From assembly GCA_002269645.1 (NCBI GenBank), contig NIVC01000108.1, positions 124,001 through 188,000 on the forward strand: a stretch of DNA of 64,000 nucleotides, read 5' to 3'. Position 1 is the first letter of the stretch. Each line of letters opens with the position of its first letter. This document shows, one piece after another, positions 16,458 through 64,000 of this stretch. Both the position numbers and the translations under genes were made by a program. The stretch is from Macrostomum lignano. Its lineage: Eukaryota. The notes under the pieces are model-generated. The model saw only the letters and a program-made list of their open reading frames with translations. It was not told the DNA's origin and ran no database searches.

Positions 16458-17843
<1,386 letters not shown>

Positions 17844-20939: not shown

Positions 20940-22985
20940 TCAGTGGGTTGCCACAAACCTCCAATCATTCATGGGTTGCCACAAACCCCAAATCATTCAT
21001 GGGTTGCCACAAACCCCAAATCATTCATGGGTTGCCACAAACCCCAAATCATCCAGTGGGTTGCCACAAACCCCAAATCATTCTGGGTTGCCACAAACCC
21101 CAAATCATCCAGTGGGTTGCGACAAACCCCAAATCATTCAGTGGGTTGCCACAAACCCCAAATCATTCAGTGGGTTGCCACAAACCCCAAATCATCCAGT
21201 AGGTTGCGACAAACCCCAAATCATTCAGTGGGTTGCGACAAACCCCAAATCATTCAGTGGGTTGCCACAAACCCCAAATCATTCAGCGGGTTGCCACAAA
21301 CCCCAAATCATTCAGCGGGTTGCCACAAACCCCAAATCATCCAGTGGGTTGCGACAAACCCCAAATCATCCAGTGGGTTGCCACAAACCCCAAATCATTC
21401 AGCGGGTTGCCACAAACCCCAAATCATGCAGTGGGTTGCCACAAACCCCAAATCATTCAGTGGGTTGCCACAAACCCCAAATCATTCAGTGGGTTGCCAC
21501 AAACCCCAAATCATTCAGTAGGTTGCGACAAACCCCAAATCATTCAGTAGGTTGCGACAAACCCCAAATCATTCAGTAGGTTGCCACAAACCCCAAATCA
21601 TTCAGTAGGTTGCCACAAACCCCAAATCATTCAGTGGGTTGCCACAAACCCCAAATCATTCTGGGTTGCCACAAACCCCAAATCATTCAGTAGGTTGCCA
21701 CAAACCCCAAATCATTCAGTGGGTTGCCACAAACCCCAAATCATCCGGTGGGTTGCCACAAACCCCAAATCATCCAGTGGGTTGCCACAAACCCCAAATC
21801 ATCCAGTGGGTTGCCACAAACCCCAATCCACTCAGTGGGTTGCCACAAACCCCAAATCATCCAGTGGGTTGCCACAAACCCCAAATCATCCAGTGGGTTG
21901 CGACAAACCCCAAATCATTCAGTGGGTTGCCACAAACCCCAAATCATTCAGCGGGTTGCCACAAACCCCAAATCATTCAGCGGGTTGCCACAAACCCCAA
22001 ATCATCCAGTGGGTTGCGACAAACCCCAAATCATCCAGTGGGTTGCCACAAACCCCAAATCATTCAGCGGGTTGCCACAAACCCCAAATCATGCAGTGGG
22101 TTGCCACAAACCCCAAATCATTCAGTGGGTTGCCACAAACCCCAAATCATTCAGTGGGTTGCCACAAACCCCAAATCATTCAGTAGGTTGCGACAAACCC
22201 CAAATCATTCAGTAGGTTGCGACAAACCCCAAATCATTCAGTAGGTTGCCACAAACCCCAAATCATTCAGTAGGTTGCCACAAACCCCAAATCATTCAGT
22301 GGGTTGCCACAAACCCCAAATCATCCGGTGGGTTGCCACAAACCCCAAATCATCCAGTGGGTTGCCACAAACCCCAAATCATCCAGTGGATTGCCACAAA
22401 CCCCAAATCATTCAGTGGGTTGCCACAAACCCCAAATCATCCAGTAGGTTGCGACAAACCCCAAATCATTCAGTAGGTTGCGACAAACCCCAAATCATTC
22501 AGTAGGTTGCCACAAACCCCAAATCATTCAGTAGGTTGCCACAAACCCCAAATCATTCAGTGGGTTGCCACAAACCCCAAATCATCCGGTGGGTTGCCAC
22601 AAACCCCAAATCATCCAGTGGGTTGCCACAAACCCCAAATCATCCAGTGGGTTGCCACAAACTCCAATCCACTCAGTGGGTTGCCACAAACCCCAAATCA
22701 TCCAGTGGGTTGCCACAAACCCCAAATCATCCAGTGGGTTGCCACAAACCCCAAATCATCCAGTGGGTTGCCACAAACCCCAAATCATTCAGTAGGTTGC
22801 GACAAACCCCAAATCATTCAGCGGGTTGCCACAAACCCCAAATCATTCAGTGGGTTGCGACAAACCCCAAATCATTCAGCGGGTTGCCAAAAACCCCAAA
22901 TCATCCAGTGGGTTGCGACAAACCCCAAATCATTCAGTGGGTTGCCACAAACCCCAATCCACTCAGTGGGTTGCCCCAAACCCTA
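20940..22985. repeat. Minisatellite, 29-bp unit GTGGGTTGCCACAAACCCCAAATCATTCA with higher-order duplications
   Basis: About 70 copies. Rare variant ATCATGCAG recurs at ~21426 and ~22091. Confidence 0.98.
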
Positions 22986-23225
22986 ATCCACTGCCCATTT
23001 TCCATTCCGTTTCAGTTTAGCAAGAGGCCAAAACCATAATTTCACTTCAAGTCCTTTTTTCTTAGAAGCAGACGGCACGTTGGCGTCGATAACCAGCATC
23101 AGAGCCAGTATATTTGGTTAATAAAGACAAAAATGGTTCCAATCGGAAAGAGAAATGTTTCAAAATTTGAATTATAAACAAAATTTAATGATGAAATATT
23201 AAAATGAAGAAGTCTTCCACGGGGC

Positions 23226-32067: not shown

Positions 32068-34500
32068 TCACGGCACCACTTCATATTCGTTTTCGTCAGC
32101 GGCATTCAGGTAGTCGGCCGGCCGCTCCGAGGCGCACATCTCGCAGCCCGGCCGCTCCGGCGGGTTCCGGTAGGTGCATATGGGACAGCTCCAGCCGGGC
32201 TGCGGGCGGGGGCGGCACCGCGAGTGAGGCGTCCGTCTGGGGAATCTAGCTGGGGAATCTAGCTGGGGAATCTAGCTGGGGAATCTAGCTGGGGAATCTA
32301 GCTGGGGAATCTAGCTGGGGAATCTAGCTGGGGAATCTAGCTGGGGAATCTAGCTGGAGAATCTAGCTGGGAAATCTAGCTGGGGAATCTAGCTGGGGAA
32401 TGTAGCTGGGGAATAATTTAGCTGGGGAATAATTTAGCTGGGGAATATAGCTGGGAATAATTTAGCTGGGAAATATAGCTGGGGAATAATTTAGCTGGGG
32501 AATATAGCTGGGGAATCTAGCTGGGAAATCTAGCTGGGGAATCTAGCTGGTGAATGTAGCTGGGGAATCTAGCTGGGGAATCTAGCTGGGGAATAATTTA
32601 GCTGGGGAATCTAGCAGGGGAATCTAGCTGGGAAATCTAGCTGGGAATCTAGCTGGGGAATAATTTAGCTGGGGAATATAGCTGGGGAATAATTTAGCTG
32701 GGGAATCTAGCTGGGGAATCTAGCTGGGGAATAATTTAGCTGGGGAATCTAGCTGGGGAATCTAGCTGGGGAATAATTTAGCTGGGGAATCTAGCTGGGG
32801 AATAATTTAGCTGGGGAATCTAGCTGGGGAATCTAGCTGGGGAATAATTTAGCTGGGGAATAATTTAGCTGGGGAATCTAGCTGGGGAATCTAGCTGGGA
32901 AATCTAGCTGGGAATCTAGCTGGGGAATAATTTAGCTGGTAATATAGCTGGGGAATAATTTAGCTGGGGAATCTAGCTGGGGAATCTAGCTGGGGAATCT
33001 AGCTGGGGAATCTAGCTGGGGAATCTAGCTGGGGAATCTAGCTGGGGAATCTAGCTGGGGAATAATTTAGCTGGGGAATCTAGCTGGGGAATCTAGCTGG
33101 GGAATCTAGCTGGGGAATAATTTAGCTGGGGAATCTAGCTGGGGAATCTAGCTGGGGAATAATTTAGCTGGGGAATAATTTAGCTGGGGAATCTAGCTGG
33201 GGAATCTAGCTGGGAAATCTAGCTGGGAATCTAGCTGGGGAATAATTTAGCTGGGGAATCTAGCTGGGGAATCTAGCTGGGGAATCTAGCTGGGGAATCT
33301 AGCTGGGGAATAATTTAGCTGGGGAATCTAGCTGGGGAATCTAGCTGGGGAATCTAGCTGGGGAATCTAGCTGGGGAATAATTTAGCTGGGGAATCTAGC
33401 TGGGGAATCTAGCTGGGGAATCTAGCTGGGGAATCTAGCTGGGGAATAATTTAGCTGGGGAATCTAGCTGGGGAATAATTTAGCTGGGGAATAATTTAGC
33501 TGGGGAATCTAGCTGGGGAATCTAGCTGGGGAATCTAGCTGGGGAATCTAGCTGGGGAATCTAGCTGGGGAATCTAGCTGGGGAATAATTTAGCTGGGGA
33601 ATCTAGCTGGGGAATCTAGCTGGGGAATCTAGCTGGGGAATAATTTAGCTGGGGAATCTAGCTGGGGAATCTAGCTGGGGAATCTAGCTGGGGAATCTAG
33701 CTGGGGAATAATTTAGCTGGGGAATCTAGCTGGGGAATATAGCTGGGGAATCTAGCTGGGGAATCTAGCTGGGGAATCTAGCTGGGGAATCTAGCTGGGG
33801 AATAATTTAGCTGGGGAATCTAGCTGGGGAATATAGCTGGGGAATCTAGCTGGGGAATCTAGCTGGGGAATCTAGCTGGGGAATCTAGCTACCAATATGA
33901 TAAGCAACTGCTGAGGTGTTTTACCTCGATATTTTCTGGAACTGGCGGCTGCGGCTGCATCGGCGGCTCAGGCAGCTGAGGCCGCAACGCTGGCGGCTGC
34001 GGCAGCGGCTCCGCCCACATTTTCTGTGCAGGGGCGGCGGCGGCGACTGGGGCGGGGGCGGCAGGCTGTCCGGGAGCTGGTGGCGGTCGCTGCTGTCCCC
34101 ACCTGTGCTTGAACAGGTCCTTGCTCAGCAGGTAAAGATGCACAACCACCTCGTGCTTGTGCTCCAGCTCGCCCAGCGGGGTGCTGTCCGGCGGGATTCG
34201 GCCGCAGGCGACGCAGCACTGCGCCTGGCGGGGAATCTCCAGCTCGGAGGCCACGCGCATCTTCAGCTCCGCCACGGTGCTGGCCGTGCTGAACTTGAAC
34301 AGCCGCGGCTTGGGCAGCTCTTTGTCGCGGTCGCGGAAGAACACCTTGACTAGGAGACCCTCGCTGGACTGCGGGAACACCCGGATGGAGCCGCCCGACT
34401 GGCACAGCTGCACCACCGCTTGCCTGGCAGCCTCCGCTTTCTGACTGCAGATGGCGTCCTGCAGCCGGTTGGCAAGGTCGGCAGGAGTCTGGTGGCCCAT
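32068..34500 (-). CDS. SHARPIN/HOIL-1L(RBCK1)-like protein: LTM + UBL + Pro-rich linker + NZF, no RBR; ~235 aa; complement(join(32068..32199,33925..34500))
   Basis: [24 protein letters not shown] resembles the LUBAC tethering motif. [28 protein letters not shown] resembles the HOIL-1L UBL (TVASLKDMV..YLYLLS). The second exon, not in the ORF track, gives [26 protein letters not shown], an NZF. Phase 0 junction. An acceptor near 34510 suggests an additional upstream exon. Confidence 0.85.
32238..33890. repeat. Intronic G-rich minisatellite, 13-bp CTAGCTGGGGAAT with 16-bp GCTGGGGAATAATTTA variant
   Basis: About 120 units; occupies ~96% of intron 32200..33924. Confidence 0.98.
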
Positions 34501-42010: not shown

Positions 42011-45000
42011 ATGCACCTGTGCAGTGCTGGGCCCAGTGCTTTGCGCCAGTTGTTGCTGTTAGCACTGCTTTCTATAGCGGTTTCTGCTGCACCTGACAAA
42101 TGCAGCGTCTGCAACCGCCTGACAGAGGCTTTTGAGCAAGGCCTGCAGCGCACCGCCAAGGACAACTTTGGCGGGGGCAACACGCACTGGGAGGAGAGCC
42201 GCCTTGGCAGCTGGGCCAGCAGCGAAACTCGCCTTGTGGACATACAGGTAAAGCATTTGCATCCCAATTGCAGTTTTAATCCTCTACAAATAAATCTAAT
42301 TGTTGTTTCACCAGCTCATCCAAATCCAGACACCCGAATCTCGAATTTGAGTATCCCGAATTCCAGAGTTCTGAATCCCAGAATCCAAGAATCCCGAATC
42401 CCAATAACCTAGAATCCTGAATCCGAGAATCCCAAATCCCAGAATCTCGAATACTGAATCCGAGAATCCCAAATCCCAGAATCTCAAATCCTGAATCCGA
42501 GAATCCCGAATCCCAGAATCCCGAATCCCAGAATCCCGAATCCCAGAATCCCGAATCCCGAATCCCCGAATCCCGAATCCCAGAATCTCGAATCCTGAAT
42601 CCCAAAATCCAGAATCCCATCCCAGAATCTCGAATCCCATAATCCCAGAATCCCGGATCCCAGAATCTCGAATCCCCGAATCCCGAATCCCAGAATCCCG
42701 AATCCCACCATCTCGAATCCCGAATCTCGAATCCCAGAATCCCGGATCCCAAAATTCCGGATCCCAGAATCCTGGATCCCAAAATTCCGGATCCCAGAAT
42801 CCTGGATCCCAGAATCTCGAATCCCAGAATCCCCAATCCCGAATCCCAGAATCCGCGAATCCCAGAATCCCAAATCCCGAATCTACGAATCCCAGTTTCG
42901 GACGCCCCATCAGGCAGCAACTGAGATGGCCATATAAAACCCTCCGCTGCCTGGCAGGAGCGCCTGTGCTCAGACGAAGGCAAGGAGGAGGCGGTGGCCT
43001 GTCACGCCCTGCTCGAGCAGTTCGAGGAGCCTCTCGAAGGCTGGTGGTTTGGCGACTTCCGCCGAGATCCGGGCAAATCCGCCGCCAAGGCTGCCGCCGC
43101 CCTGCGCGAACTGCTGTGCGTGCGGACCGGCGGCCTCTGCTGCCAGCACGGCGCCTTCGGGCCACAGTGCGCCGCCTGCCCCGTCTGCGGCCTGCGCGGC
43201 CACTGCGACGGCAATGGGACCCGCGCAGGCAGCGGCCGCTGCACCTGCGACTCCGGCTACCGGGGTGAGCTGTGCGACCAATGCGAGACCGGCCGCTACC
43301 TGGCCACCGCCGAGCCGCTCCTCTGTCTCGCCTGCCACCCCGCCTGCGGCTCCGCCGGCTGCGTTGACGGCCCCAGCGAGTCCAACTGTCGCGACTGCGC
43401 CACCGGCTACCAGCCGGCCGAGGCCTCCGGCGCTGCCGACGGCAGAGTCTCCTGCATCGACGTGGACGAGTGCGCGGCCACGCCCGGGCCCTGCGCCGGG
43501 CCGAACGAAACCTGCGTGAACTCGCCCGGCAGCTTCGCCTGCGACTGTCTGCCCGGCTTCCAGAGACCCGCGGCTGGCGGCGACTGCCAGCCCGCGGAGA
43601 CCGCGGCTGGAACTGACGGCGATTCCGCGGAAACTGGTGGCGATTCCGCGGAAACTGGTGACGATTCCGCGGAAAGTAGCGGAGAATCCGCGGAAACTGG
43701 CGGAGAATCCGCGGAAACTGGCGGAGAATCCGCGGAAACTGGCGGAGAATCCGCGGAAACTGCTACTCCAGCTATGGATAAGGGTACGTTAGTGTTAGTT
43801 GTTACTGCAGTCTTATATAACTGCAGCTAGTTACCACCGCTGCCCCCTCCTCAGTCCTTCAGTGAGCCACCACTGCCTCACCCTCAGTCCCTCAGTGAGC
43901 CACTGCCTCACCCTCAGTCCCTCAGTGAGCCACTGCCTCACCCTCAGTCCCTCAGTGAGCCACTGCCTCACCCTCAGTCCCTCAGTGAGCCACCACTGCC
44001 TCACCCCCAGTCCCTCAGTGAGCCACCGCTGCCCCCCGTCCTCAGTCCCTCAGTGAGCCACTGCCTCACCCTCAGTCCCTCAGTGAGCCACTGCCTCACC
44101 CTCAGTCCCTCAGTGAGCCACTGCCTCACCCTCAGTCCCTCAGTGAGCCACTGCCTCACCCCCAGTCCCTCAGTGTGAGCCATCGCTGCCCCCTCCTCAG
44201 TCCCTCAGTGAGCCACCGCTGTCCCCCCTCAGTCCCTCAGTGAGCCACCGCTGTCCCCCCTCAGTCCCTCAGTGAGCCACCGCTGCCCCCCTCAGTCCCT
44301 CAGTGAGCCACCGCTGTCCCCCCTCAGTCCCTCAGTGAGCCACCGCTGCCCCCCTCAGTCCCTCAGTGAGCCACCGCTGCCCCCCCTCAGTCCCTCAGTG
44401 AGCCACCGCTGCCCCCCCTCAGTCCCTCAGTGAGCCACCGCTGCCCCCCTCAGTCCCTCAGTGAGCCACCGCTGCCCCCCTCAGTCCCTCAGTGAGCCAC
44501 CGCTGCCCCCTCAGTCCCTCAGTGAGCCACCGCTGCCCCCCCCCTCAGTCCCTCAGTGAGCCACCGCTGCCCCCCCTCAGTCCCTCAGTGAGCCACCGCT
44601 GCCCCCCCTCAGTCCCTCAGTGAGCCACCGCTGCCCCCTCAGTCCCTCAGTGAGCCACCGCTGCCCCCCCCCCTCAGTCCATCAGTGAGCCACCGCTGCC
44701 CCCCCTCAGTCCCTCAGTGAGCCACCGCTGTCCCCCCTCAGTCCCTCAGTGAGCCACCGCTGTCCCCCCTCAGTCCCTCAGTGAGCCACCGCTGCCCCCC
44801 TCAGTCCCTCAGTGAGCCACCGCTGTCCCCCCTCAGTCCCTCAGTGAGCCACCGCTGCCCCCCTCAGTCCCTCAGTGAGCCACCGCTGCCCCCCTCAGTC
44901 CCTCAGTGAGCCACCGCTGCCCCCCTCAGTCCCTCAGTGAGCCACCGCTGCCCCCCTCAGTCCCTCAGTGCGCCACCGCTGCCCCCCCTCAGTCCCTCAG

Positions 45001-45729: not shown

Positions 45730-46782
45730 GATTAGAAGCCGCTCGGTTATTGGGTGACATCACTCCGGACTAGAAGCCGCTCGGTTATTGAGTGACATCA
45801 CTCCGGATTAGAAGCCGCTCGGTTATTGAGTGACATCACTCCGGATTAGAAGCCACTCGGTTATTGAGTGACATCACTCCGGACTAGAAGCCGCTCGGTT
45901 ATTGAGTGACATCACTCCGGACTAGAAGCCGCTCGGTTATTGAGTGACATCACTCCGGACTAGAAGCCGCTCGGTTATTGAGTGACATCACTCCGGACTA
46001 GAAGCCGCTCGGTTATTGAGTGACATCACTCCGGATTAGAAGCCGCTCGGTTATTGAGTGACATCACTCCGGACTAGAAGCCGCTCGGTTATTGAGTGAC
46101 ATCACTCCGGACTAGAAGCCGCTCGGTTATTGAGTGACATCACTCCGGACTAGAAGCCGCTCGGTTATTGAGTGACATCACTCCGGACTAGAAGCCGCTC
46201 GGTTATTGAGTGACATCACTCCGGACTAGAAGCCGCTCGGTTATTGAGTGACATCACTCCGGACTAGAAGCCGCTCGGTTATTGAGTGACATCACTCCGG
46301 ATTAGAAGCCGCTCATCTGGGTTAAGGAGTGACCCCACTCCGGACTAGAAGCCGCTCATCTGGGTTAAGGAGTGACCCCACTCCGGACTAGAAGCCGCTC
46401 ATCTGGGTTAAGGAGTGACCCCACTCCGGACTAGAAGCCGCTCATCTGGGTTAAGGAGTGACCCCACTCCGGACTAGAAGCCGCTCATCTGGGTTAAGGA
46501 GTGACATCACTTCGGACTAGAAGCCGCTCATCTGGGTTAAGGAGTGACCCCACTCCGGACTAGAAGCCGCTCATCTGGGTTAAGGAGTGACATCACTTCG
46601 GACTAGAAGCCGCTCATCTGGGTTAAGGAGTGACCCCACTCCGGACTAGAAGCCGCTCATCTGGGTTAAGGAGTGACATCACTTCGGACTAGAAGCCGCT
46701 CATCTGGGTTAAGGAGTGACCCCACTCCGGACTAGAAGCCGCTCATCTGGGTTAAGGAGTGACATCACTCCGGACTAGAAGC
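45730..46782. repeat. Compound minisatellite: 38-bp unit block followed by related 43-bp unit block
   Basis: TAGAAGCCGCTCGGTTATTGAGTGACATCACTCCGGAC, then from ~46303 TAGAAGCCGCTCATCTGGGTTAAGGAGTGACCCCACTCCGGAC. Confidence 0.97.
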
Positions 46783-47339
46783 CACTTGACCTGTATCAGT
46801 CTGACATCACTCCAGGTGAGTAAAAATAACTGAACCAGTGAAATGAGCACACAGTTTTCCTTCAGAGTCATTGGGTGAGACAGAACGCGTCTGACCCGGC
46901 CCCTCATACGAGCGTACAGATTGGAATTCAATAATTGTATTTTCAGAGTTGATGCAGCCACTTTAACATTATCCGTAGAGCAGAGATGCTGAGGATTAAA
47001 GAAACAGTAACACAGTAACAAAGTATAAACAAATTATCGTACAATACAATAGCTGGTGTACAAAGTACAGCATCAGATGCATCCGTGAATAAGAATTAAT
47101 TTCAACACAAAGGCAAGGGTCTTCAGTTCTCAAATATACTCAATTTTTTGCGGCATAAGGTAAAGTTGGCGCACTTTCGAACTTTCAAAAAAAATAAAAA
47201 AAACAAAAGCAGAGATACTGCAATTTAAAATATTCACAGCAAAGATAAAGCAATGAACACACCTACGGGGTTTTAAAACCACACGCTGTGCAATGAAAAT
47301 ATTTTAATATTTTAGGACGTAATGATTCAGCCTGCATCT

Positions 47340-47810
47340 CAACTACCTGTCTGCCTACCACTGCACCTCAGCTACCTGTCTGCCCATCACTGCACCTCTG
47401 CTACCTGTCTGTGTTCATCACCGCACCTCAGCCACCTGTCTGTGTTCATCACCGCACATCAGCCACCTGTCTGCCCACCACCGCACCTCTGCCACCTGTC
47501 TGTGTTCATCACCGCACATCAGCCACCTGTCTGCCCACCACCGCACCTCTGCCACCTGTCTGTGTTCACCACCGCACATCAGCCACCTGTCTGTGTTCAT
47601 CACCGCACATCAGCCACCTGTCTGTGTTCATCACCGCACATCAGCCACCTGTCTGTGTTCATCACCGCACATCAGCCACCTGTCTGTGTTCATCACCGCA
47701 CATCAGCTACCTGTCTGCCTATCACTGCACCTCTGCTACCTGTCTGCCCATCACTGCACCTCTGCTACCTGTCTGCCCATCACTGCACGTCTGCTACCTG
47801 TCTGCCCAAT
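47340..47810. repeat. Minisatellite, ~31-bp unit CAGCCACCTGTCTGTGTTCATCACCGCACAT
   Basis: Direct reading; degenerate ends. Confidence 0.92.
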
Positions 47811-47936
47811 TGCTAGACCATTCTGCCGCTATATTTTATCAGGCAATATAAGCTTAGATTTGAAAAAAAGTCAATCAGATTTGAACCAGCACAGCTTATG
47901 ATCAGTCTGAAAGTTAATAACGAAATCCCCAGTCAG

Positions 47937-49388
47937 TTACAGCAGTTGCTCAGCCTGGATGCTCCGCAGCGCCCGCTGAATGAGCTGCCTGAAGCCGCGT
48001 TCGTGCGCCAGGCTCATCATGAGCGACTCCATCGGCTTCTCAGACATCTTGGCGAGCATCACCGCGGTGCCGTGTTCGCCCGAGAATGCGTTGAGGAACG
48101 CGGTCTCCTTGCCGGTGTCGGCGAGGCCGCTAAGCAGGCGGTGCAGCTCAGCGTCGGAGAGGCCGAGAGGCTGCTGCGAATCCGCGGCCTCCGGCAAAGA
48201 CGAGGCAGCCGGGGCGGCGGCGGCCGACGGCACCGTCGTCTGGCGCTGCAGGTCGCCCGCCGGCGCGGTGCACATGCCGCTGTCTATGGTGCCCACCGCG
48301 CTGCCAGCCGACTTCAGCCAAGTCTCTTCCGCTGCTGCCGCCTCATTTCCGCCTGCGGCCTCCGAGATGCCCGGCTGCAGCTGCTGCTCGAACAGCTCCT
48401 TGAGCTCCGGTCGGTCGGCGGCGAGCTCCTCGGCCGTGACGCCGTCGCTGTCCTCCTCCAGCGGGTCGGCACCGCTGTCCAGCAGGAACCTGACCGCCCG
48501 AGCGGCCCCGGCACTCACAGCTGACATCAGCGGTGTCCACCGCTTGCCGCGGTGCTGCCTCTCGTCCAGGTTTACGCTGATGCCGGCATCTCTGGCGAAC
48601 TGCAGCAGCGGGCTCAGCATGTCCTCCCTGTCCCGAGCTGCCATCATGTGAAGCACCGTGTCACCCGCCCGGTCATTCATGTGGATGGCGGCAGACACCT
48701 GTCCCGCTGCGAGCCGGCCCTCCTCGATCAGCCTCTTTGTAACCCGCAGACCGGAGACGAGCACCTCCGTGGACTCCTCCAGCGCGCAGTGGTGCAGGAA
48801 GTTCCTACCGTCGTTGTCGTACAGTCGGTGAAGCTGGGTCGGCTCCCGGATCAGCAGGCGCTCCATCAGGCTGTCGGCTGAGCTGCCGCTCTGCGTGCTG
48901 AGCATGAGCAGACTTTCTCGATGGCGAGTCCGATCGTCAAGGGCGTCGGGGTTTCGCTTGACCGCAATGTCCACCAGCTTCTCGGCCCGCTCGCCCTGCT
49001 GCCTCGCCAGCGCGGACGCCATCGGGTTGTCGCCATCGCTGTTGTGGACTCTCAGCATCTCGGAGCTGTCCTCGAACGCCTTCAGGAGGATGTCCTCACA
49101 GTTGTCGCCCTCGCTGTACTGGTGCATCGCTGTAGCCAGGATTCTGGGGTACTCGAGCAGCAGGCGGCGCTGCATGTCCTGCGGCAGGGAGCGAAACCTC
49201 AGCGATTCCGGAGTCTCAGGAGCTGGACCATCAGCTCCCAGACTTAACTGCTGCATTTGGTCTTCCACACTGATGTCGCTGGCTCTTGCAGGTTTTTTGC
49301 TTTTCTCTTCTAATTTTTTATCCATGAGCAAGTCTGCTTTTTTATTGGCTAGGTCTATTCTGCAATGCAAAACATCATTTTCATACAT
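47937..49388 (-). CDS. Ankyrin-repeat protein copy A (N1-core-C1), up to 483 aa, DSGMCT degron-like motif, death-fold-like tail
   Basis: Ankyrin motifs SDGDNPMASALA, NDGRNFLHHCA, DRAGDTVLHMMAA, RWTPLMSAV..AVRFLLDSGADP and SDGVTAEELA. The AT-rich N-terminus makes the true start uncertain. Confidence 0.85.
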   Translation of the reverse strand: MYENDVLHCRIDLANKKADLLMDKKLEEKSKKPARASDISVEDQMQQLSLGADGPAPETPESLRFRSLPQDMQRRLLLEYPRILATAMHQYSEGDNCEDILLKAFEDSSEMLRVHNSDGDNPMASALARQQGERAEKLVDIAVKRNPDALDDRTRHRESLLMLSTQSGSSADSLMERLLIREPTQLHRLYDNDGRNFLHHCALEESTEVLVSGLRVTKRLIEEGRLAAGQVSAAIHMNDRAGDTVLHMMAARDREDMLSPLLQFARDAGISVNLDERQHRGKRWTPLMSAVSAGAARAVRFLLDSGADPLEEDSDGVTAEELAADRPELKELFEQQLQPGISEAAGGNEAAAAEETWLKSAGSAVGTIDSGMCTAPAGDLQRQTTVPSAAAAPAASSLPEAADSQQPLGLSDAELHRLLSGLADTGKETAFLNAFSGEHGTAVMLAKMSEKPMESLMMSLAHERGFRQLIQRALRSIQAEQLL

Positions 49389-50299
49389 TTTACATACATT
49401 TCTTTTAATTTTAACAGTCTATACCATATGCACTGATACTATACAAAGTATAGATATATAAGTTTATGATAAGGAACTACAATTTTAGTTTATTAGATAT
49501 TTTTTAAACAAAAAATTGTATGAATTAGACATAAACAGATATTTTTTAACTTATTTTTTGCTTTAACTAAATAATGGATTATTATAAACTATTCAATTGT
49601 GATACAAAATATTTTGAATAACAAACAAGGTATTCATCACAGGTATGGATCCAGAAAATTTTAAATGGGAGGATGCAGATTACTAAGGTATATGTAATAT
49701 ACACTCAGCAACATCAAAAAGTCGCCATCACAGAAGATTCCTTTTTGAGAGGGCAGCAGGTAAAGTCTCTCAATCTTTGCGAGTGACGCAACTTAGCTAC
49801 ACCGTGGCAGACTTGAGTTGAGGAACAAAGTGGGGGGAGTGGTGTGCAAGGGTTGGATGGATCATAGCTACCCCAATCAGTTTTCTTGTATATTTTATTT
49901 CAGAATAGTCCAAGAGAAATTGCTCACTGGCGCATAGAGTGGCAACTTTTCAACATTGCTGAGTATATATATATATATCATATATATGCATATCATATTA
50001 CATATATGAGACAGGCATTAATAATAGCTCTAATACTTTTAAATTTTACTCGTTTTATGTTTGCCTTTCTTAGAAAAACCTTTATTCAAATCTGCGCAAA
50101 ATATTTGTTTGAATGTTGTGGTTTGCAAAAATATTTCTGCAATTATTATTTTGTTTAAACTATAATGCATTGTGGGTATAAATAGACATGCTGAGCAGAC
50201 TTGAGGAAGCAACCATTTGCTGCCTCTTGGTTTTTCGATAAGCAAATTTAGTTTGTTCTAAATATTGAAATCGCTTAAAGACTTAATCATTTCTTAGAG

Positions 50300-50812
50300 T
50301 ATAAGAGCCCCAATTGGGAGTATCAGAAACCGCTACAAGCGAGAAACCGCCTCAGGGCAGTAATAGTAAATTCGCCTCAGGGCAGGAGAACCGCCTCAGA
50401 GCGAGGGAAAGATTGCCTCAGGGCAGAGAAGGAGCACAAGCTGTGACCCTCTGATCCAGGGAACGCCCAGGACTAAGAGAATAATATTAGAGAAAGTATA
50501 GGAATAGAATAGACAGTGCTATTAGACCGCTCAGGCCAGAAAAGTACGATAGAAGTACATACGCTACCAATAGAAAGACAATTAATAACCAGTAGAATTA
50601 TTAAGGAGAAATAGCTTTATTACAACTTTGGGTGGCAGTTAGGATTCTCAGTGTACAGGGAAAAGCACTGTGACAACTTGGTAACAGCAGAGGGATTTTG
50701 TATCGTACAGAAGAAACCCCTAGTACAACTTGGTGGCATAACAGTGGAATTCTCATAGAGAGCCAAAAGGCCTAGTAAAGCTAGCAAAAGAATAATTAAG
50801 AGCCCTGTAACA
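50300..50812. mobile_element. Possible LTR-retroelement remnant
   Basis: Ends in TGTAACA; contains three ACAACT-TGG.. PBS-like junctions and CGCCTCAGGGC subrepeats. No partner LTR or pol sequence in the window. Confidence 0.3.
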
Positions 50813-51058
50813 TATATATATGTACACAATAATGTGTATTTTCCATATAAGAAATAAAAAAAATTCTAACTCAATGAAGGATGGCCTGTGTACCTCCCCC
50901 AAAGTCTGCCACTGATTCAATATTATTTATATAGTTTTAAAATATGATTAGGCCTAAAGTCTTTGCAAATATATTTTAACTAGGCCTAAGCCCTAAGGCT
51001 ATAGCTTCATTAAACTCGTTGTATAGGCCTAGACATTATGTTATATGAATGGTGAAAG

Positions 51059-52002
51059 ACCTGTATAACTTTCGCCGACACATTTTCAGACAGATCTTCC
51101 GACACATTTTACGACACTTAAAATGTCGCAAAGTGTCAGAAAAAGTGTTGGAAAAGTTGACATTTGCCGACACATATTTTCCGACACCTAAAGTAATGCT
51201 GCAGTGTCTGATGCTTTACTTCTGCCAACACATCTTCCGACACTTAAAATGTCACTTCTTAGAGCGAGGTCATATACATGTAGCTCGTACTATTCATGTT
51301 AGCTTCATGTATGTTTGTTAAGGTACTGCAGCAGACTGCAGTGTTGCGCATCATTTAGTTGCATCAATTGATATACACACATGTATATGTACATGTAATA
51401 GTTGGCATTTTCTGATTACAAACAGTACGAGCGTATGTATTGTAAATGAGGGCATGATATTTTCAGTGTCAAATGTATTCGCAGTCAAATTAATACAAAA
51501 AAATGCTAGCTATAATTACTAAGTAAATACATAATACTAAATCCCAGTGAAGTCAGAATATCAGATAATTGTAGTATGGCACTCCAAAGTAATACGAATC
51601 GAAAGCTCGATCTAATTAATGTCCAAATTTTTGAACATTACAGATACTAACTTTTTTGAAATACTTTGTGCATACATGTAGCTACATTTACATGACCTCG
51701 CTCTAAGAAGTGACATTTTAAGTGTTGGAAGATGTGTTGGCAGAAGTAAAGCATCAGACACTGCAGCATTACTTTAGGTGTCGGAAAATATGTGTCTGCA
51801 AATGTTAACTTTTACGACACTTTTTCCGACACTTTTTGCGACATTTTAAGTGTCGTAAAATGTGTCGGAAGATCTGTCTGAAAATGTGTCAGCAAAAGTT
51901 AACCGTTGCGACACTTTTTGCGACACTTTTTGCAACATTTTAAGTGTCGTAAAATGTGTCGGAAGATCTGTCTGAAAATGTGTCGGCGAAAGTTATACAG
52001 GT
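51059..52002. mobile_element. Foldback/MITE-like element with >200-bp TIRs
   Basis: ACCTGTATAACTTTCGCCGACACATTTTCAGACAGATCTTCC.. at left and ..GTGTCGGCGAAAGTTATACAGGT at right. Inverted match extends to CTTAGAGCGAGGTCAT. The right arm has an internal ~80-bp duplication. No TSD found. Confidence 0.85.
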
Positions 52003-53666
52003 ATAGGAAAGGCTAGGCTTATGAAAACAAATCCTTTGCATTTAGACTTAAATAGCCCCCCTCTAAGAGTTTGTACAAAGGCATCATTCATCAAGCAAGC
52101 CTTTTTTAAATTAAAATATACTAAACAGACTAAGCTTGCTTTGCCTTTGTTGGGCTCCTATCCTATGCTATGAGATCTATAGTAAAAAATATTTGGAACC
52201 ATTGCTAAATAAATATTTAATGTTATGTTATTAAGACAGATTACTAGATTAGTAACTAACAATTAAACTGAAATTTCTAATTTAATGTAATATATGGAGG
52301 GCTAATCTTTAGTTCCAATTTTCCAAGATAGGCTTAGACATAGTATGAGCATGACACTATTCATTAAATTAAATAGTTGGCCCTAGAAAGAAATGTTTTT
52401 ATATTTAAAGATTTCTAAAATTAATCGGCTACTGGTCACATAGATAGAGACAACTCATTTCAGTGGGGTTTAGCTGTTAAAACCTTTTGTAGGGTCTAAT
52501 ATAAAATAATTATTTAAAATTAATAATAGATAGTCGGGACTAAATAAAGCAAGTGACTGCCAATTTAATTTATAAACTTCACAAGTCTAAATAGAAAATA
52601 AATGTCAATGATATCTCGAAAAGAAATTCCATGATGCAATTAAATAATTTAGGACAATGAAAAAACACAAATCAATACCTATTGAAACATAATAATTCAA
52701 TTAAGGAAAAGAAGTCCCCGGATAATTCATGGAAGAACGAGCGAAGTAGCAGACAAGACAAATACAAGGTACCAAACTTGGCCCTAACGCAAGTCCAAAA
52801 CGAAATTTTAAACGCGGCAGCTCCACGGCAGTTCCACGGCAGTTCCACGGCTAGTCCGTATGCATTCTCTTTCTGTGTCATGGAAAAACCCTTGGCAAGC
52901 CTGGATATACTCGTCAGTAGTGAAGAGTGAAATAAAAAATTCTGAATATTGAGGGTGGCAGAAATAAGAAATGTTGAAATTTTCATCGTTTTAACAGCTA
53001 AATGAACTTGAAGAGCAGATCGCAGTTGCTTTCTAATTCTACACAGTTTTTTAACCGCTTTATGGGCATCTTTGCAACCTGAGAGAATCTTGGAGGTTGG
53101 AGAGGGAGCCCAATAACTGGGGATCTAAAGACTGTGGGCCCAGCCTGAGCATCTGGGAGGAGTCATATCGAAATTGTCTCACAAAAATCCTAAATCCATT
53201 ATTCCCTTTTTAGTGTGAAGTGACAAGAAAAATGCCAGGAAGAAGTCTTCATATTTTTATCTCTTCAATGAGTAGTGACACATGCTTTTACATTGTATTA
53301 TAATTTGAGGTAATTTACAAAGCCCTTTAAATATTCATATCGATGGCAGGGTATTGGATGCACAAACACAAGATCAGAGTATAATGACAAGTATAAAAAA
53401 CTATAAACTGACGTATACAAGCGTATGCTGTTGAGGCTACTAAACTATGAAGACTATCGGGGATAATATACATGGTTTTAGTACAAACAGTGTAAGATTT
53501 TAGTAGCTATATGGATATAGTGTATACCAGCGCAAGTGAACAAGAAGAGCAAACATATGGAATTTTAAACAGTTGTGATGAGGCAAGAACTATTAAGTGG
53601 CTAAATTAGTCAAGTAGCAGTTAAGCTGCACAGCTCAGTTTGCACTGGGGCAAACCGTGCAGCTTA

Positions 53667-55010
53667 TCAACCTTCTTTAACTTCTTTGAAGGCTTGAAGC
53701 AGAGTTTCCCTGCTCACGTGATGGCCATGGGCTCCCCAGATGCTCAGGGCGGCTCTGAGGGGCCGCTCAGAAAGGGTTGCTAATCCAGTGTGATCTGGCA
53801 GACGATCATCAAGAATGCGGAAGAGTGCGCTGAAGAATGCCGAAGTCTTGCCAGTGCTCAACAGTTGGTCCTCCAGACTCGCTAAGTCCATCTCAGAGAG
53901 CTCACTGCCCCGTTGAGGTTCAGCCGAGGCGACACTCGGCGCACTGAGAGACGACACACCGCTGTCAATGGAGCGCACCTGCCCCAACCCGCAATTTGTC
54001 AGCCACGATTCGGCTTTGACCATCGGCGGGACGGCATCGCAACTCGAGTCCGGGTTGTCTTCCTCAGCCTCAGCGATCTCCATGTCTTCTGAGTGCTCGG
54101 ACTGAAGCAGCTCCTTGAGCTCCGGTCGGTCGGCGGCGAGCTCCTCGGCCGTGACGCCGTCGCTGTCCTCCTCCAGCGGGTCGGCACCGCTGTCCAGCAG
54201 GAACCTGACCGCCCGAGCGGCCCCGGCACTCACAGCTGACATCAGCGGTGTCCACCGCTTGCCGCGGTGCTGCCTCTCGTCCAGGTTTACGCTGATGCCG
54301 GCATCTCTGGCGAACTGCAGCAGCGGGCTCAGCATGTCCTCCCTGTCCCGAGCTGCCATCATGTGAAGCACCGTGTCACCCGCCCGGTCATTCATGTGGA
54401 TGGCGGCAGACACCTGTCCCGCTGCGAGCCGGCCCTCCTCGATCAGCCTCTTTGTAACCCGCAGACCGGAGACGAGCACCTCCGTGGACTCCTCCAGCGC
54501 GCAGTGGTGCAGGAAGTTCCTACCGTCGTTGTCGTACAGTCGGTGAAGCTGGGTCGGCTCCCGGATCAGCAGGCGCTCCATCAGGCTGTCGGCTGAGCTG
54601 CCGCTCTGCGTGCTGAGCATGAGCAGACTTTCTCGATGGCGAGTCCGATCGTCAAGGGCGTCGGGGTTTCGCTTGACCGCAATGTCCACCAGCTTCTCGG
54701 CCCGCTCGCCCTGCTGCCTCGCCAGCGCGGACGCCATCGGGTTGTCGCCATCGCTGTTGTGGACTCTCAGCATCTCGGAGCTGTCCTCGAACGCCTTCAG
54801 GAGGATGTCCTCACAGTTGTCGCCCTCGCTGTACTGGTGCATCGCTGTAGCCAGGATTCTGGGGTACTCGAGCAGCAGGCGGCGCTGCATGTCCTGCGGC
54901 AGGGAGCGAAACCTCAGCGATTCCGGAGTCTCAGGAGCTGGACCATCAGCTCCCAGACTTAACTGCTGCATTTGTTCGTCAACTGGTTCCACGTGAGGCA
55001 TGCTGCGCAT
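53667..55010 (-). CDS. Ankyrin-repeat protein copy B (N2-core-C2), 447 aa, DSGVSS degron-like motif, death-fold-like tail
   Basis: Core translation identical to copy A. Distinct tail ..PLRAALSIW...VSRETLLQAFKEV. Candidate acceptor GCGTTAG nine bases upstream of the ATG. Confidence 0.88.
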   Translation of the reverse strand: MRSMPHVEPVDEQMQQLSLGADGPAPETPESLRFRSLPQDMQRRLLLEYPRILATAMHQYSEGDNCEDILLKAFEDSSEMLRVHNSDGDNPMASALARQQGERAEKLVDIAVKRNPDALDDRTRHRESLLMLSTQSGSSADSLMERLLIREPTQLHRLYDNDGRNFLHHCALEESTEVLVSGLRVTKRLIEEGRLAAGQVSAAIHMNDRAGDTVLHMMAARDREDMLSPLLQFARDAGISVNLDERQHRGKRWTPLMSAVSAGAARAVRFLLDSGADPLEEDSDGVTAEELAADRPELKELLQSEHSEDMEIAEAEEDNPDSSCDAVPPMVKAESWLTNCGLGQVRSIDSGVSSLSAPSVASAEPQRGSELSEMDLASLEDQLLSTGKTSAFFSALFRILDDRLPDHTGLATLSERPLRAALSIWGAHGHHVSRETLLQAFKEVKEG

Positions 55011-55371
55011 TGCTTGGGCCTAACGCTTTGCTTGTTGTAGATATATGAGCAGATTATAATTTAGTTCCAGGTTCAAAGCCTGCAAGCGTATTATAAATAT
55101 ACCCAGGTTAGAATTCTTGCCCGCGGCCGTTCTTTTGGTAACCCGCGAGCAATCCACGGATTCGTCTGAACGATGCTATTTTTAGCACTGGCATAATATG
55201 GAACCGCGTAAAGCGAACGTACTTTGACAGGCACACAATGTGGACCAGAATTTGCTATGCTTTTACTTTAAATTCACTGTCTAAGCTCTAAGCTAATTAA
55301 TAATTGCTTCTTCAAGACTAACCACTGCTAATGCTCAATGTCCAAAAACTGTTTTCTTTAGACCAATTCAC

Positions 55372-56814
55372 TGCTTCCCTCAGTCCAGCCCGCTGTTCCC
55401 CCAGTCCAACCCGCTGTTCCCTCAGTCAAACCCACTGTTCCCTCAGTCCAGCCCGCTGTTCCCTCAGTCCAGCCCGCTGTTCCCTCAGTCCAACCCACTG
55501 TTCCCTCAGTCCAGCCCGCTGTTCCCTCCGTCCAACCCACAGTTCTCTCAGTCCAGCCCGCTGTTCCCTCAGTCCAACCCGTTGTTCCCTCAGTCCAACC
55601 CACAGTTCCCTCAGTCCAGCCCGCTGTTCCCTCAGTCCAACCCGCTGTTCCCTTAGTCCAACCCACTGTTCCCTCAATCCAGCCCGCTGTTCCCTCAGTC
55701 CAACCCACAGTTCCCTCAGTCCAACCCACAGTTCCCTCAGTCCAACCCACTGTTCCCTCAGTCCAGCCCGCTGTTCCCTCAGTCCAGCCCGCTGTTCCCT
55801 CAGTCCAACCCACTGTTCCCTCAGTCCAGCCCGCTGTTCCCTCAGTCCAACCCACAGTTCTCTCAGTCCAGCCCGCTGTTCCCTCAGTCCAACCCGTTGT
55901 TCCCTCAGTCCAACCCACAGTTCCCTCAGTCCAGCCCGCTGTTCCCTCAGTCCAACCCGTTGTTCCCTTAGTCCAACCCACTGTTCCCTCAATCCAGCCC
56001 GCTGTTCCCTCAGTCCAACCCGTTGTTCCCTCAGTCCAACCCACAGTTCCCTCAGTCCAACCCACTGTTCCCTCAGTCCAGCCCGTTGTTTCCTCAGTCC
56101 AACCCACTGTTCCCTCAATCCAGCCCGCTGTTCCCTCAGTCCAACCCACTGTTCCCTCAGTCCAGCCCGCTGTTCCCTCAGTCCAACCCACTGTTCCCTC
56201 AGTCCAGCCCGCTGTTCCCTCAGTCCAGCCCGCTGTTCCCTCAGTCCAACCCACAGTTCTCTCAGTCCAGCCCGCTGTTCCCTCAGTCCAACCCGTTGTT
56301 CCCTCAGTCCAACCCACAGTTCCCTCAGTCCAGCCCGCTGTTCCCTCAGTCCAACCCACAGTTCCCTCAGTCCAGCCCGCTGTTCCCTCAGTCCAGCCCG
56401 TTGTTCCCTCAGTCCAACCCACAGTTCCCTCAGTCCAGCCCGCTGTTCCCTCAGTCCAACCCGTTGTTCCCTTAGTCCAACCCACTGTTCCCTCAATCCA
56501 GCCCGCTGTTCCCTCAGTCCAACCCGTTGTTCCCTCAGTCCAACCCACAGTTCCCTCAGTCCAACCCACTGTTCCCTCAGTCCAGCCCGTTGTTTCCTCA
56601 GTCCAACCCACTGTTCCCTCAATCCAGCCCGCTGTTCCCTCAGTCCAACCCACTGTTCCCTCAGTCCAGCCCGCTGTTCCCTCAGTCCAACCCACTGTTC
56701 CCTCAGTCCAGCCCGCTGTTCCCTCAGTCCAGCCCGCTGTTCCCTCAGTCCAACCCACAGTTCTCTCAGTCCAGCCCGCTGTTCCCTCAGTCCAACCCGT
56801 TGTTCCCTCAGTCC
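55372..56814. repeat. Minisatellite, 21-bp unit GTTCCCTCAGTCCAGCCCGCT, with ~504-bp higher-order repeat
   Basis: About 68 copies. Variant TTGTTTCCTCAG recurs at ~56091 and ~56595. Confidence 0.98.
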
Positions 56815-56826
56815 ATCCCCAGTCAG

Positions 56827-58185
56827 TTACAGCAGTTGCTCAGCCTGGATGCTCCGCAGCGCCCGCTGAATGAGCTGCCTGAAGCCGCGTTCGTGCGCCA
56901 GGCTCATCATGAGCGACTCCATCGGCTTCTCAGACATCTTGGCGAGCATCACCGCGGTGCCGTGTTCGCCCGAGAATGCGTTGAGGAACGCGGTCTCCTT
57001 GCCGGTGTCGGCGAGGCCGCTAAGCAGGCGGTGCAGCTCAGCGTCGGAGAGGCCGAGAGGCTGCTGCGAATCCGCGGCCTCCGGCAAAGACGAGGCAGCC
57101 GGGGCGGCGGCGGCCGACGGCACCGTCGTCTGGCGCTGCAGGTCGCCCGCCGGCGCGGTGCACATGCCGCTGTCTATGGTGCCCACCGCGCTGCCAGCCG
57201 ACTTCAGCCAAGTCTCTTCCGCTGCTGCCGCCTCATTTCCGCCTGCGGCCTCCGAGATGCCCGGCTGCAGCTGCTGCTCGAACAGCTCCTTGAGCTCCGG
57301 TCGGTCGGCGGCGAGCTCCTCGGCCGTGACGCCGTCGCTGTCCTCCTCCAGCGGGTCGGCACCGCTGTCCAGCAGGAACCTGACCGCCCGAGCGGCCCCG
57401 GCACTCACAGCTGACATCAGCGGTGTCCACCGCTTGCCGCGGTGCTGCCTCTCGTCCAGGTTTACGCTGATGCCGGCATCTCTGGCGAACTGCAGCAGCG
57501 GGCTCAGCATGTCCTCCCTGTCCCGAGCTGCCATCATGTGAAGCACCGTGTCACCCGCCCGGTCATTCATGTGGATGGCGGCAGACACCTGTCCCGCTGC
57601 GAGCCGGCCCTCCTCGATCAGCCTCTTTGTAACCCGCAGACCGGAGACGAGCACCTCCGTGGACTCCTCCAGCGCGCAGTGGTGCAGGAAGTTCCTACCG
57701 TCGTTGTCGTACAGTCGGTGAAGCTGGGTCGGCTCCCGGATCAGCAGGCGCTCCATCAGGCTGTCGGCTGAGCTGCCGCTCTGCGTGCTGAGCATGAGCA
57801 GACTTTCTCGATGGCGAGTCCGATCGTCAAGGGCGTCGGGGTTTCGCTTGACCGCAATGTCCACCAGCTTCTCGGCCCGCTCGCCCTGCTGCCTCGCCAG
57901 CGCGGACGCCATCGGGTTGTCGCCATCGCTGTTGTGGACTCTCAGCATCTCGGAGCTGTCCTCGAACGCCTTCAGGAGGATGTCCTCACAGTTGTCGCCC
58001 TCGCTGTACTGGTGCATCGCTGTAGCCAGGATTCTGGGGTACTCGAGCAGCAGGCGGCGCTGCATGTCCTGCGGCAGGGAGCGAAACCTCAGCGATTCCG
58101 GAGTCTCAGGAGCTGGACCATCAGCTCCCAGACTTAACTGCTGCATTTGTTCGTCAACTGGTTCCACGTGAGGCATGCTGCGCAT
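56827..58185 (-). CDS. Ankyrin-repeat protein copy C (N2-core-C1 chimera), 452 aa
   Basis: N-terminus and upstream flank match copy B (offset 3175). Core plus tail match copy A (offset 8890). Confidence 0.75.
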   Translation of the reverse strand: MRSMPHVEPVDEQMQQLSLGADGPAPETPESLRFRSLPQDMQRRLLLEYPRILATAMHQYSEGDNCEDILLKAFEDSSEMLRVHNSDGDNPMASALARQQGERAEKLVDIAVKRNPDALDDRTRHRESLLMLSTQSGSSADSLMERLLIREPTQLHRLYDNDGRNFLHHCALEESTEVLVSGLRVTKRLIEEGRLAAGQVSAAIHMNDRAGDTVLHMMAARDREDMLSPLLQFARDAGISVNLDERQHRGKRWTPLMSAVSAGAARAVRFLLDSGADPLEEDSDGVTAEELAADRPELKELFEQQLQPGISEAAGGNEAAAAEETWLKSAGSAVGTIDSGMCTAPAGDLQRQTTVPSAAAAPAASSLPEAADSQQPLGLSDAELHRLLSGLADTGKETAFLNAFSGEHGTAVMLAKMSEKPMESLMMSLAHERGFRQLIQRALRSIQAEQLL

Positions 58186-58546
58186 TGCTTGGGCCTAACG
58201 CTTTGCTTGTTGTAGATATATGAGCAGATTATAATTTAGTTCCAGGTTCAAAGCCTGCAAGCGTATTATAAATATACCCAGGTTAGAATTCTTGCCCGCG
58301 GCCGTTCTTTTGGTAACCCGCGAGCAATCCACGGATTCGTCTGAACGATGCTATTTTTAGCACTGGCATAATATGGAACCGCGTAAAGCGAACGTACTTT
58401 GACAGGCACACAATGTGGACCAGAATTTGCTATGCTTTTACTTTAAATTCACTGTCTAAGCTCTAAGCTAATTAATAATTGCTTCTTCAAGACTAACCAC
58501 TGCTAATGCTCAATGTCCAAAAACTGTTTTCTTTAGACCAATTCAC

Positions 58547-59560
58547 TGCTTCCCTCAGTCCAGCCCGCTGTTCCCCCAGTCCAACCCGCTGTTCCCTCAG
58601 TCCAGCCCGCTGTTCCCTCAGTCCAGCCCGCTGTTCCCTCAGTCCAGCCCGCTGTTCCCTCAGTCCAGCCCGCTGTTCCCTCAGTCCAACCCGCTGTTCC
58701 CTCAGTCCAGCCCGCTGTTCCCTCAGTCCAGCCCGCTGTTCCCTCAGTCCAGCCCGCTGTTCCCTCAGTCCAGCCCGCTGTTCCCTCAGTCCAGCCCGCT
58801 GTTCCCTCAGTCCAACCCACAGTTCCCTCAGTCCAGCCCGCTGTTCCCTCAGTCCAACCCACAGTTCCCTCAGTCCAGCCCGCTGTTCCCTCAGTCCAAC
58901 CCGTTGTTCCCTCAGTCCAACCCACAGTTCCCTCAGTCCAGCCCGCTGTTCCCTCAGTCCAACCCACAGTTCCCTCAGTCCAGCCCGCTGTTCCCTCAGT
59001 CCAACCCACAGTTCCCTCAGTCCAGCCCGCTGTTCCCTCAGTCCAGCCCGCTGTTCCCTCAGTCCAACCCGCTGTTCCCTCAGTCCAGCCCGCTGTTCCC
59101 TCAGTCCAGCCCGCTGTTCCCTCAGTCCAGCCCGCTGTTCCCTCAGTCCAACCCGCTGTCCCAGTCCCACCCGCTGTCTTCACAAGGTCAACCCACTGTT
59201 TCTCCAAGGTCAACCCACTGTTTCTCCAAGGTCAACCCACTGTTTCCCCAAGGCCAATCGACTGTTTCTCCAAGGCCAACCCACTAGTCTAACCCACTGT
59301 TTTCCCAAGGTCGATCCACTGTTTCACCAAGGCTAACCCACTGTTTCCCCAAGACCAACTCAAAAGCCAACCCACTGCTTACCCAAGGCCAACCCACTGT
59401 TTCCCCAAGACCAACTCAAAAGCCAACCCACTGTTTACCCAAGGCCAACCCACTGTTTACCCAAGACCAACTCAAAAGCCAACCCATTGTTTACCCAAGG
59501 CCAACCCACTGTTTTCCCAAGGCCGACATACTGTGTTATCAAGACCAACCCCCGTTTCTC
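58547..59560. repeat. Second copy of the 21-bp minisatellite (58547-~59170) grading into a diverged CCAAGGCCAACCCACTGTTT repeat
   Basis: Direct reading. Confidence 0.93.

Positions 59561-60075: not shown

Positions 60076-64000
<3,925 letters not shown>

Follow-up and report, generated by a model that had tools for sequence, protein, structure and literature searches.

Three tandem genes in a 64-kb window of the Macrostomum lignano genome (the window being the whole stretch of 64,000 bp analyzed here) encode proteins in which an ankyrin solenoid is joined to a helical C-terminal tail by a disordered linker, and within this linker a six-residue DSG motif corresponds to the consensus of phosphodegrons of the SCF-beta-TrCP type. 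The genes, designated C1a, C2 and C1b, are apparently single-exon open reading frames (ORFs) on the minus strand, belong to the BOX15_Mlig014147 family and give products matching BOX15_Mlig014147g1. Three divergent paralogue lineages retain the motif, which is regarded as a plausible, albeit unproven, beta-TrCP-type degron. The layout, in which ankyrin repeats are combined with a DSG motif between the domains and a tail resembling a death fold, but not with a Rel domain, is a variant of the kind known from the C-terminal half of NF-kB p105 and from IkB. The proteins resemble IkB and p105 in design, whereas sequence searches do not place them in either family.

A DSG motif conserved in the disordered linker

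The three motif sites reported in the sequence-only reading, two times DSGMCT and one time DSGVSS, are real and encoded on the minus strand (Table 1). Reading the same coordinates on the plus strand only gives GAHAAV and RRHTAV, hence no motif, as the genes are located on the opposite strand. The two DSGMCT copies, however, are not independent but have to be counted as one observation, because both belong to a stretch of 1335 bp that is identical between C1a and C1b. When the entire window is translated in all six frames, DSG-[hydrophobic]-x-[ST] is found at these three sites and at no other, and in each protein the match in the linker is the sole one to the looser pattern DSG.{2,3}[ST]. The pattern D-S-G-x(2,3)-[ST], which is of the type of the ELM entry DEG_SCF_TRCP1_1, is matched exactly by DSGMCT of C1 (the sequence shared by C1a and C1b), by DSGVSS of C2 and by DSGVQS of the paralogue Mlig006948. 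The loose pattern also matches translated minisatellite DNA at 42380-42831, hits that were rejected as artefacts, while the stricter pattern is specific. On the minus strand, translation of this minisatellite repeatedly gives DSGIRDS and DSGFWDS, false positives that call for caution in any motif scan of the M. lignano genome.

When the linkers were shuffled, the motif arose at a frequency of about 1e-3 to 3e-3 in each of them and in all three lineages together in none of 200,000 trials. In 2e-4 of the shuffles, the linkers had a five-residue word of the form hydrophobic-D-S-G-hydrophobic in common. Hence, linker shuffling and the window-wide scan exclude a chance origin of the motif.

The third lineage is represented by Mlig006948 (P0003), which shows 49% identity to C1b and carries LVDSGVQS at the homologous place of its linker. 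In the three-way alignment of linker and tail from C1, C2 and Mlig006948, only 23 of 182 columns are invariant, and the longest invariant run, at the same time the sole one comprising three residues, is DSG, flanked by [IV] and [VM]. Conservation thus extends beyond DSG, with [IV] before and [VM]-x-[ST]..AP after it. Linkers and tails of the three lineages are mutually 30-40% identical, and the linker proper is poorly conserved outside the motif. For the pair C1 and C2, identity over linker and tail is about 30-33%, with islands of the form E[ST]WL, IDSG, LS..L..L...L.TGK..AF and LA..SE.P. The assertion that the linkers of C1 and C2 are otherwise unalignable was therefore overstated, given an identity of 33% across linker and tail.

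Comparison of C2 with its near-identical copy P0002 reveals five nonsynonymous and no synonymous substitutions as well as a two-residue insertion/deletion in the linker, all of them around the motif and none within it. In the ankyrin part, six synonymous and two nonsynonymous substitutions were counted, and this part is, judged from the sequences, under purifying selection. Although the counts are small, such a pattern is typical of short linear motifs within disordered regions that evolve fast. In two independent AlphaFold2 models, residues 308-369 of C2, which hold the motif, are predicted to be disordered at values between 26 and 40 for the predicted local distance difference test (pLDDT), a setting as expected for a short linear motif. 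The C2 linker begins (residues ~303-325; 54020-54110, minus strand) with a strongly acidic stretch containing many Ser and Pro residues (SEHSEDMEIAEAEEDNPDSS), which recalls the PEST region following the repeats of IkB-alpha; this segment is not conserved in C1.

Ankyrin solenoid and C-terminal tail

Pfam detects exclusively ankyrin families in these proteins. In the AlphaFold2 model of C2, for which an alignment of seven sequences served as input, the solenoid comprises eight helix pairs, corresponding to about six repeats plus an N-terminal cap, and is preceded by a disordered N-terminus (residues 1-30). The previously proposed number of five to six ankyrin repeats is consequently confirmed by Pfam and AlphaFold2 at about six. 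No Rel homology domain (RHD) is attached, as Pfam finds only ankyrin families and the ORFs begin about 40 residues before the solenoid. Likewise, an RHD signature was not detected in any frame of the window.

Modeling of whole C2 places the helical tail at residues 373-446. The same picture was obtained when linker and tail were modeled separately, giving five helices over about 75 residues at pLDDT values between 75 and 89. In a Foldseek search of the PDB, death domains occupy eight of the nine top places for the tail, among them those of p75NTR (4f44, 2n80), THOC1/p84, UNC5H2 and TRADD, followed further down by Pelle/Tube, NF-kB p105 (2dbf) and caspase recruitment domains (CARDs). A sequence profile built from five tails and compared to all PDB sequences also gives the death domain of p75NTR as best match (E = 0.017), covering helices 4-6. 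The death domain of p75NTR (TNFRSF16) is accordingly the closest known structure by both fold and sequence profile, although this similarity is marginal and at the sequence level restricted to half of the domain. As a protein, p75NTR differs in spanning the membrane as a receptor and in having no ankyrin repeats. From the models and profiles, the tail is probably a diverged and possibly truncated death fold. A winged helix-turn-helix identity, suggested for one of five family members at E ~1e-3, was discounted. Moreover, a word-indexed protein search with the tail only returned an empty result, even missing the proteins of the query itself, and is uninformative, probably due to low-complexity words.

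Possible function and points against it

The architecture suggests a modular adaptor or inhibitor with a linker motif read by beta-TrCP, a mechanism which as a whole is put forward tentatively. The ankyrin solenoid with its about six repeats would bind a partner, while the truncated death fold at the C-terminus would recruit the protein to a death-domain complex, with the p75NTR-like TNF receptor of flatworms being a candidate. The disordered linker of about 60 residues would carry [IV]-D-S-G-[VM]-x-[ST] as phosphodegron of the SCF-beta-TrCP type. Upon a signal, a kinase would phosphorylate the Ser and the Ser/Thr residue of the motif, enabling binding of beta-TrCP and ubiquitination of the protein. 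Subsequent degradation, or cutting into two modules, might then release the cargo held by the ankyrin part. In the same tentative sense, the genes could represent a Macrostomum-specific family of modular signalling proteins.

Degron logic based on beta-TrCP operates in flatworms, since the beta-catenins of planarians have retained the GSK3 sites and beta-TrCP co-precipitates with them (PMC5643146). The N-terminal degron of beta-catenin (DSGIHS), likewise located in a disordered region, follows an identical six-residue consensus and is the sole beta-TrCP degron with flatworm evidence, but it belongs to an unrelated protein context, and a chain of GSK3/CK1 priming sites as in beta-catenin does not follow the motif described here. 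The TNF receptors of flatworms are reported to resemble NGFR and possibly contain death domains (PMC7519573). As p75NTR is the best match of the tail, a receptor of this type can be inferred as possible docking partner.

The proposal touches on how wound and infection signals reach transcription in flatworms, for which this family would be a concrete candidate. Flatworms have been reported to have lost Toll-like receptors along with the larger part of canonical NF-kB signalling, with wound and infection responses running via TAK1/p38 and TBK1. None of TLR, MyD88, IRAK, IKK, IkB and NF-kB turned up in BLAST surveys of planarians and parasitic flatworms (PMC4484250), a search for p50/p105 among Platyhelminthes was negative (PMC11432056), and Toll-like receptors are absent from M. 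lignano (PMC8609888). The notion that NF-kB/Rel is missing in planarians consequently agrees with the older surveys, but not with seven divergent RHD genes reported for Schmidtea mediterranea together with a TBK1/IKK-epsilon homologue (PMC13563047), nor with a planarian gene named 'bcl3-1 aka NFkB-p105', the knock-down of which is lethal (PMC4993586). The family also bears on the question of how often the p105 arrangement of ankyrin repeats, death domain and DSG degron arose or persisted without a Rel domain. If, on the other hand, the motif is inert, these genes are just another lineage-specific ankyrin expansion. For M. lignano, both RNA interference and transgenesis are available.

Several observations weigh against a beta-TrCP-read adaptor or inhibitor. 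The motif comprises only six residues in three lineages of a single species. When 1.84 billion representative proteins were searched exhaustively with HMMER, an orthologue was not found in any other species; the true full-length relatives are exclusively M. lignano paralogues, and the remaining matches are giant generic ankyrin proteins. Two more distant paralogue types, Mlig022666 and a multi-exon gene in the window (Table 1), have neither linker nor motif. Looking up the exact proteins in the collections searched for transcript evidence returned only the genome assembly itself. For the tail, the Foldseek matches are not significant, with a best E value of 0.77 and TM scores between 0.41 and 0.52, and Pfam Death gives no match at E ≤ 10, nor do CARD, DED and Pyrin. 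When only the three DSG-bearing tails are used as profile, the p75NTR death domain still ranks first, but at E = 0.23, while a profile of the two tails of the six-helix type finds no death domain. Moreover, five helices are predicted, compared to a six-helix bundle of about 80-90 residues in the death domain superfamily. Regarding the IkB character, the first structural match of the whole C2 model is IkB-beta in complex with p65 (1oy3_D, E = 5e-8, TM score 0.78; a further entry, 1k3z_D, at rank 11), but gankyrin (0.77), Notch (0.80) and designed ankyrin repeat proteins (DARPins) score equally, so that, on these models, the rank of IkB-beta appears to be within the noise. Among the best 60 PDB sequence matches, comprising ankyrins, NOMPC, TRPA1, tankyrase and DARPins, there is no IkB, irrespective of whether the single protein or the family profile is used.

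In view of these results, the putative degron has been kept in three divergent paralogue lineages, but not in the Mlig022666-type proteins, and other species contributed no orthologues to the comparison. As the latter paralogues do without linker and motif, the motif is not a family-wide requirement. Similarly, the proposed helical tail resembling a death domain stands as a helical bundle in the AlphaFold2 models, whereas its assignment is based on death-domain matches that are top-ranked but weak, with Pfam Death remaining silent.

Alternative explanations and relation to IkB and p105

The linker motif might be a remnant of common descent without regulatory role in a young, fast-evolving and species-restricted family, in which some of the copies are redundant or assembly duplicates. 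The restriction of all homologues to M. lignano would fit such a history, as would the blocks of 867-1335 bp shared at 100% by the copies in the window, which point to very recent duplication, gene conversion or assembly redundancy. The two paralogue types managing without the motif and the lack of retrieved expression evidence in the exact-protein look-up are also in line with it. Against this, the low identity between the linkers and tails of C1, C2 and Mlig006948 indicates old lineages, and the sole multi-residue block surviving in their almost fully diverged linkers is precisely a known degron consensus. The recent substitutions cluster around the motif and avoid it, and the ankyrin part is evidently constrained by selection. 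A functionless remnant is considered somewhat less likely than a degron.

Still less probable is that the linker island is functional in another way, either as a caspase-type site cut after Asp ([IV]-D / S-G), which places a small residue directly behind the cut, or as a motif recognised by some other reader through docking or phospho-binding. Cleavage at this position would part the death-fold tail from the ankyrin domain, as Dredd cuts Relish. An Asp followed by Ser-Gly suits the established preferences after the cut, conservation includes residues on both sides of DSG, and a death-fold tail is suggestive of caspase-containing complexes. Homologues of caspase-3 and caspase-8 are retained in flatworms, and FADD, TRADD, RIPK and NIK are missing (PMC4894443). 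However, the residues at P4-P3 (GT, RS and SL) are not conserved and do not match any known caspase preference. In addition, the full six-residue beta-TrCP consensus, including the correctly spaced second Ser/Thr, is kept in three of three lineages, which would be needless for a caspase site.

The proteins might also be true orthologues of the IkB family, or descendants of a p105-type C-terminal half, inhibiting divergent flatworm Rel proteins in the canonical way instead of a non-Rel partner. The top Foldseek rank of IkB-beta, the combination of ankyrin repeats, death fold and DSG recalling the C-terminal half of p105, the occurrence of 2dbf among the tail matches as well as the divergent RHD genes and the 'bcl3-1 aka NFkB-p105' gene of planarians speak for this relationship. 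It is nevertheless improbable in view of the sequence matches devoid of any IkB, the deviating position of the motif, the window lacking an RHD motif, the HMMER search without orthologues in other animals and a tail best matching the death domain of p75NTR, not that of p105. Equally doubtful is the far-reaching scenario in which the family provides working IkB equivalents in a flatworm without canonical Toll/IKK/NF-kB signalling. Here, the death fold would tether an ankyrin inhibitor to a p75NTR-like TNF receptor complex, destruction via the beta-TrCP degron would free a divergent Rel-type or a non-Rel transcription factor, and the module would either derive from an ancestral p105 C-terminal half or have been reinvented.

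Compared to the C-terminal half of NF-kB p105/p100 (IkB-gamma-like; Relish-C), the family shares the order of ankyrin repeats and a probable death fold in one polypeptide and a DSG motif in a disordered segment, where in p105 and p100 a beta-TrCP degron of the DSG-phi-x-x-S type controls degradation or processing. In contrast to these proteins, no Rel domain is attached or nearby, the motif lies between ankyrin part and death fold and not after the death domain, five instead of six tail helices are predicted, and there is no affinity at the sequence level. With the classical IkB proteins (IkB-alpha, -beta, -epsilon and Cactus), the M. lignano proteins have in common the stand-alone character, about six ankyrin repeats, the DSG-phi-x-S motif (DSGLDS in IkB-alpha), and the acidic Ser/Pro-rich segment following the repeats in C2, with IkB-beta ranking first among the structural matches. 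However, gankyrin and the ankyrin domains of Notch match the structure equally well, the IkBs do not stand out in sequence searches, and they possess no death-fold tail. Whereas the degron precedes the repeats in classical IkBs such as IkB-alpha and comes after the death domain in p105 and p100, the motif described here is C-terminal to the repeats (residues 349-354 of 447 in C2). Since several of the features that define IkB and p105 are lacking, the resemblance is one of design. Hence, the designation as IkB/p105-like is appropriate with respect to architecture and motif, but not with respect to IkB-specific sequence similarity and motif position. A further comparable layout is that of ANKDD1A and ANKDD1B, stand-alone proteins with ankyrin repeats and a C-terminal death domain, without catalytic or DNA-binding domain. 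Their architecture fits by description, although none of them ranked above the generic ankyrin proteins in the HMMER search, and they are not known to contain a degron.

Gene copies and paralogue family

The coordinates of the genes and their parts are summarized in Table 1. The C2 protein is also called on contig NIVC01000625.1 of assembly GCA_002269645.1 and is 77% identical to the named protein BOX15_Mlig014147g1 (BLASTP). Database annotation of the proteins is hypothetical only, and a paper describing these genes was not found, with searches combining Macrostomum with NF-kB or death domain leading to general surveys only.

Table 1. Positions of the ankyrin genes, their domains and flanking repeats in the window.
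Feature	Position	Strand	Description
C1a gene	47937-49388	minus	ORF of 483 aa as listed
C1a motif DSGMCT	48267-48284	minus	exact duplicate of the C1b copy
C2 gene	53667-55010	minus	single-exon ORF of 447 aa; stop codon 53667-53669
C2 ankyrin solenoid	54081-54896	minus	residues ~39-310; Pfam Ank_2/Ank/Ank_4; AlphaFold2 pLDDT 85-97
C2 disordered linker (predicted)	53904-54080	minus	residues ~311-369 (~60); AlphaFold2
C2 motif DSGVSS	53949-53966	minus	residues 349-354, context VRSIDSGVSSLSAPS; translation
C2 helical tail (predicted)	53670-53903	minus	residues ~370-447, five-helix death-fold-like bundle; AlphaFold2, Foldseek, profile
C1b gene	56827-58185	minus	single-exon ORF of 452 aa
C1b motif DSGMCT	57157-57174	minus	residues 338-343, context VGTIDSGMCTAPA; translation
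C1b helical tail (predicted)	56830-57060	minus	residues ~376-452, homologous to the C2 tail; alignment
Distant multi-exon paralogue, Mlig022666 type	4496-6670 (exons 6050-6670, 5121-5363, 4496-4843)	minus	32% identity to P0029, E = 4e-21
Minisatellite arrays flanking the copies	46011-46783, 47345-47804, 55369-56819, 58550-59177, 59211-59521		TRF; units 43, 31, 21, 79, 56 bp

Exact DNA identity extends over 867 bp between C1a and C2 (48393-49259 and 54108-54974), over 1335 bp including linker and tail between C1a and C1b (47925-49259 and 56815-58149) and over 1320 bp between C2 and C1b (54108-55427 and 57283-58602). C1b is an exact chimera, with 5' flank and ankyrin part of the C2 type and linker and tail of the C1a type, and C2 diverges abruptly from C1 past codon 302. 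The tails of C1 and C2 are old paralogues, fused to an ankyrin part in which gene conversion or very recent duplication has lately erased the differences between copies. Alternatively, the blocks of 100% identity may stem from unequal crossing-over or assembly redundancy. All three copies are bordered by minisatellite arrays, and as the same 21-bp unit is present on both sides of C1b, these arrays may mediate rearrangements. The 31-bp array is also assigned periods of 60 and 91 by TRF, and the 21-bp array periods of 42, 63 and 105.

Upstream of 49259, the 5' end of C1a differs from the other copies, and its true first exon and start codon are for this reason uncertain. The segment 49260-49388 (minus strand) is a distinct AT-rich 5' end with an acceptor-like ttgcattgcag, and the database model P0001 starts inside it.

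Beyond Mlig006948, the family includes Mlig022666 (P0029; 35% identity to C1b), which has no motif, and the partial models Mlig014481 (P0033; 34%) and Mlig015446 (P0121; 30%). A family-profile search retrieved only P0001, P0002 and P0121 in addition to generic ankyrin proteins, and no orthologues elsewhere. The tail of the multi-exon paralogue at 4496-6670, which is devoid of a long linker and of the DSG motif, ends with LGQPELAALLEADG, resembling a sixth death-domain helix, and Mlig022666-type tails carry an additional segment at the C-terminus, possibly corresponding to helix 6. Alignment of the two tail groups by hhalign is weak (E = 0.021, probability 2%). As the split tail profiles are weak as well, the full-length alignment is the basis for regarding the two tail types as homologous. 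An ankyrin ORF at 61970-62488 (plus strand) was rejected as a further family member, giving E > 1 in BLASTP and a weak Ank_2 match (E = 5e-4) below the Pfam cut-off.

Neighbouring genes and repeats

A polyubiquitin gene at 16470-17843 (plus strand) encodes six head-to-tail ubiquitin units in 457 aa; its nearness to genes with degron-like motifs is most likely coincidence. The ORF at 33889-34500 (minus strand) matches the ubiquitin family weakly (E = 6e-4, below the Pfam cut-off) and continues into a proline-rich tail. Minisatellite arrays similar to those bordering the gene copies fill much of the window (e.g., 363-4274, 18540-19527, 20878-23039, 23483-26779 and 62467-63565), where they give rise to long spurious ORFs. 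A calpain gene is represented by exons at 11085-12474 (minus strand; Peptidase_C2, E = 1.7e-62; Calpain_III, E = 4.6e-41). Finally, in an ORF at 42994-43830 (plus strand), a calcium-binding EGF domain (E = 3e-9) is combined with an acidic tail of GDSAET repeats; the ORF probably represents one exon of a gene for a secreted or membrane protein.

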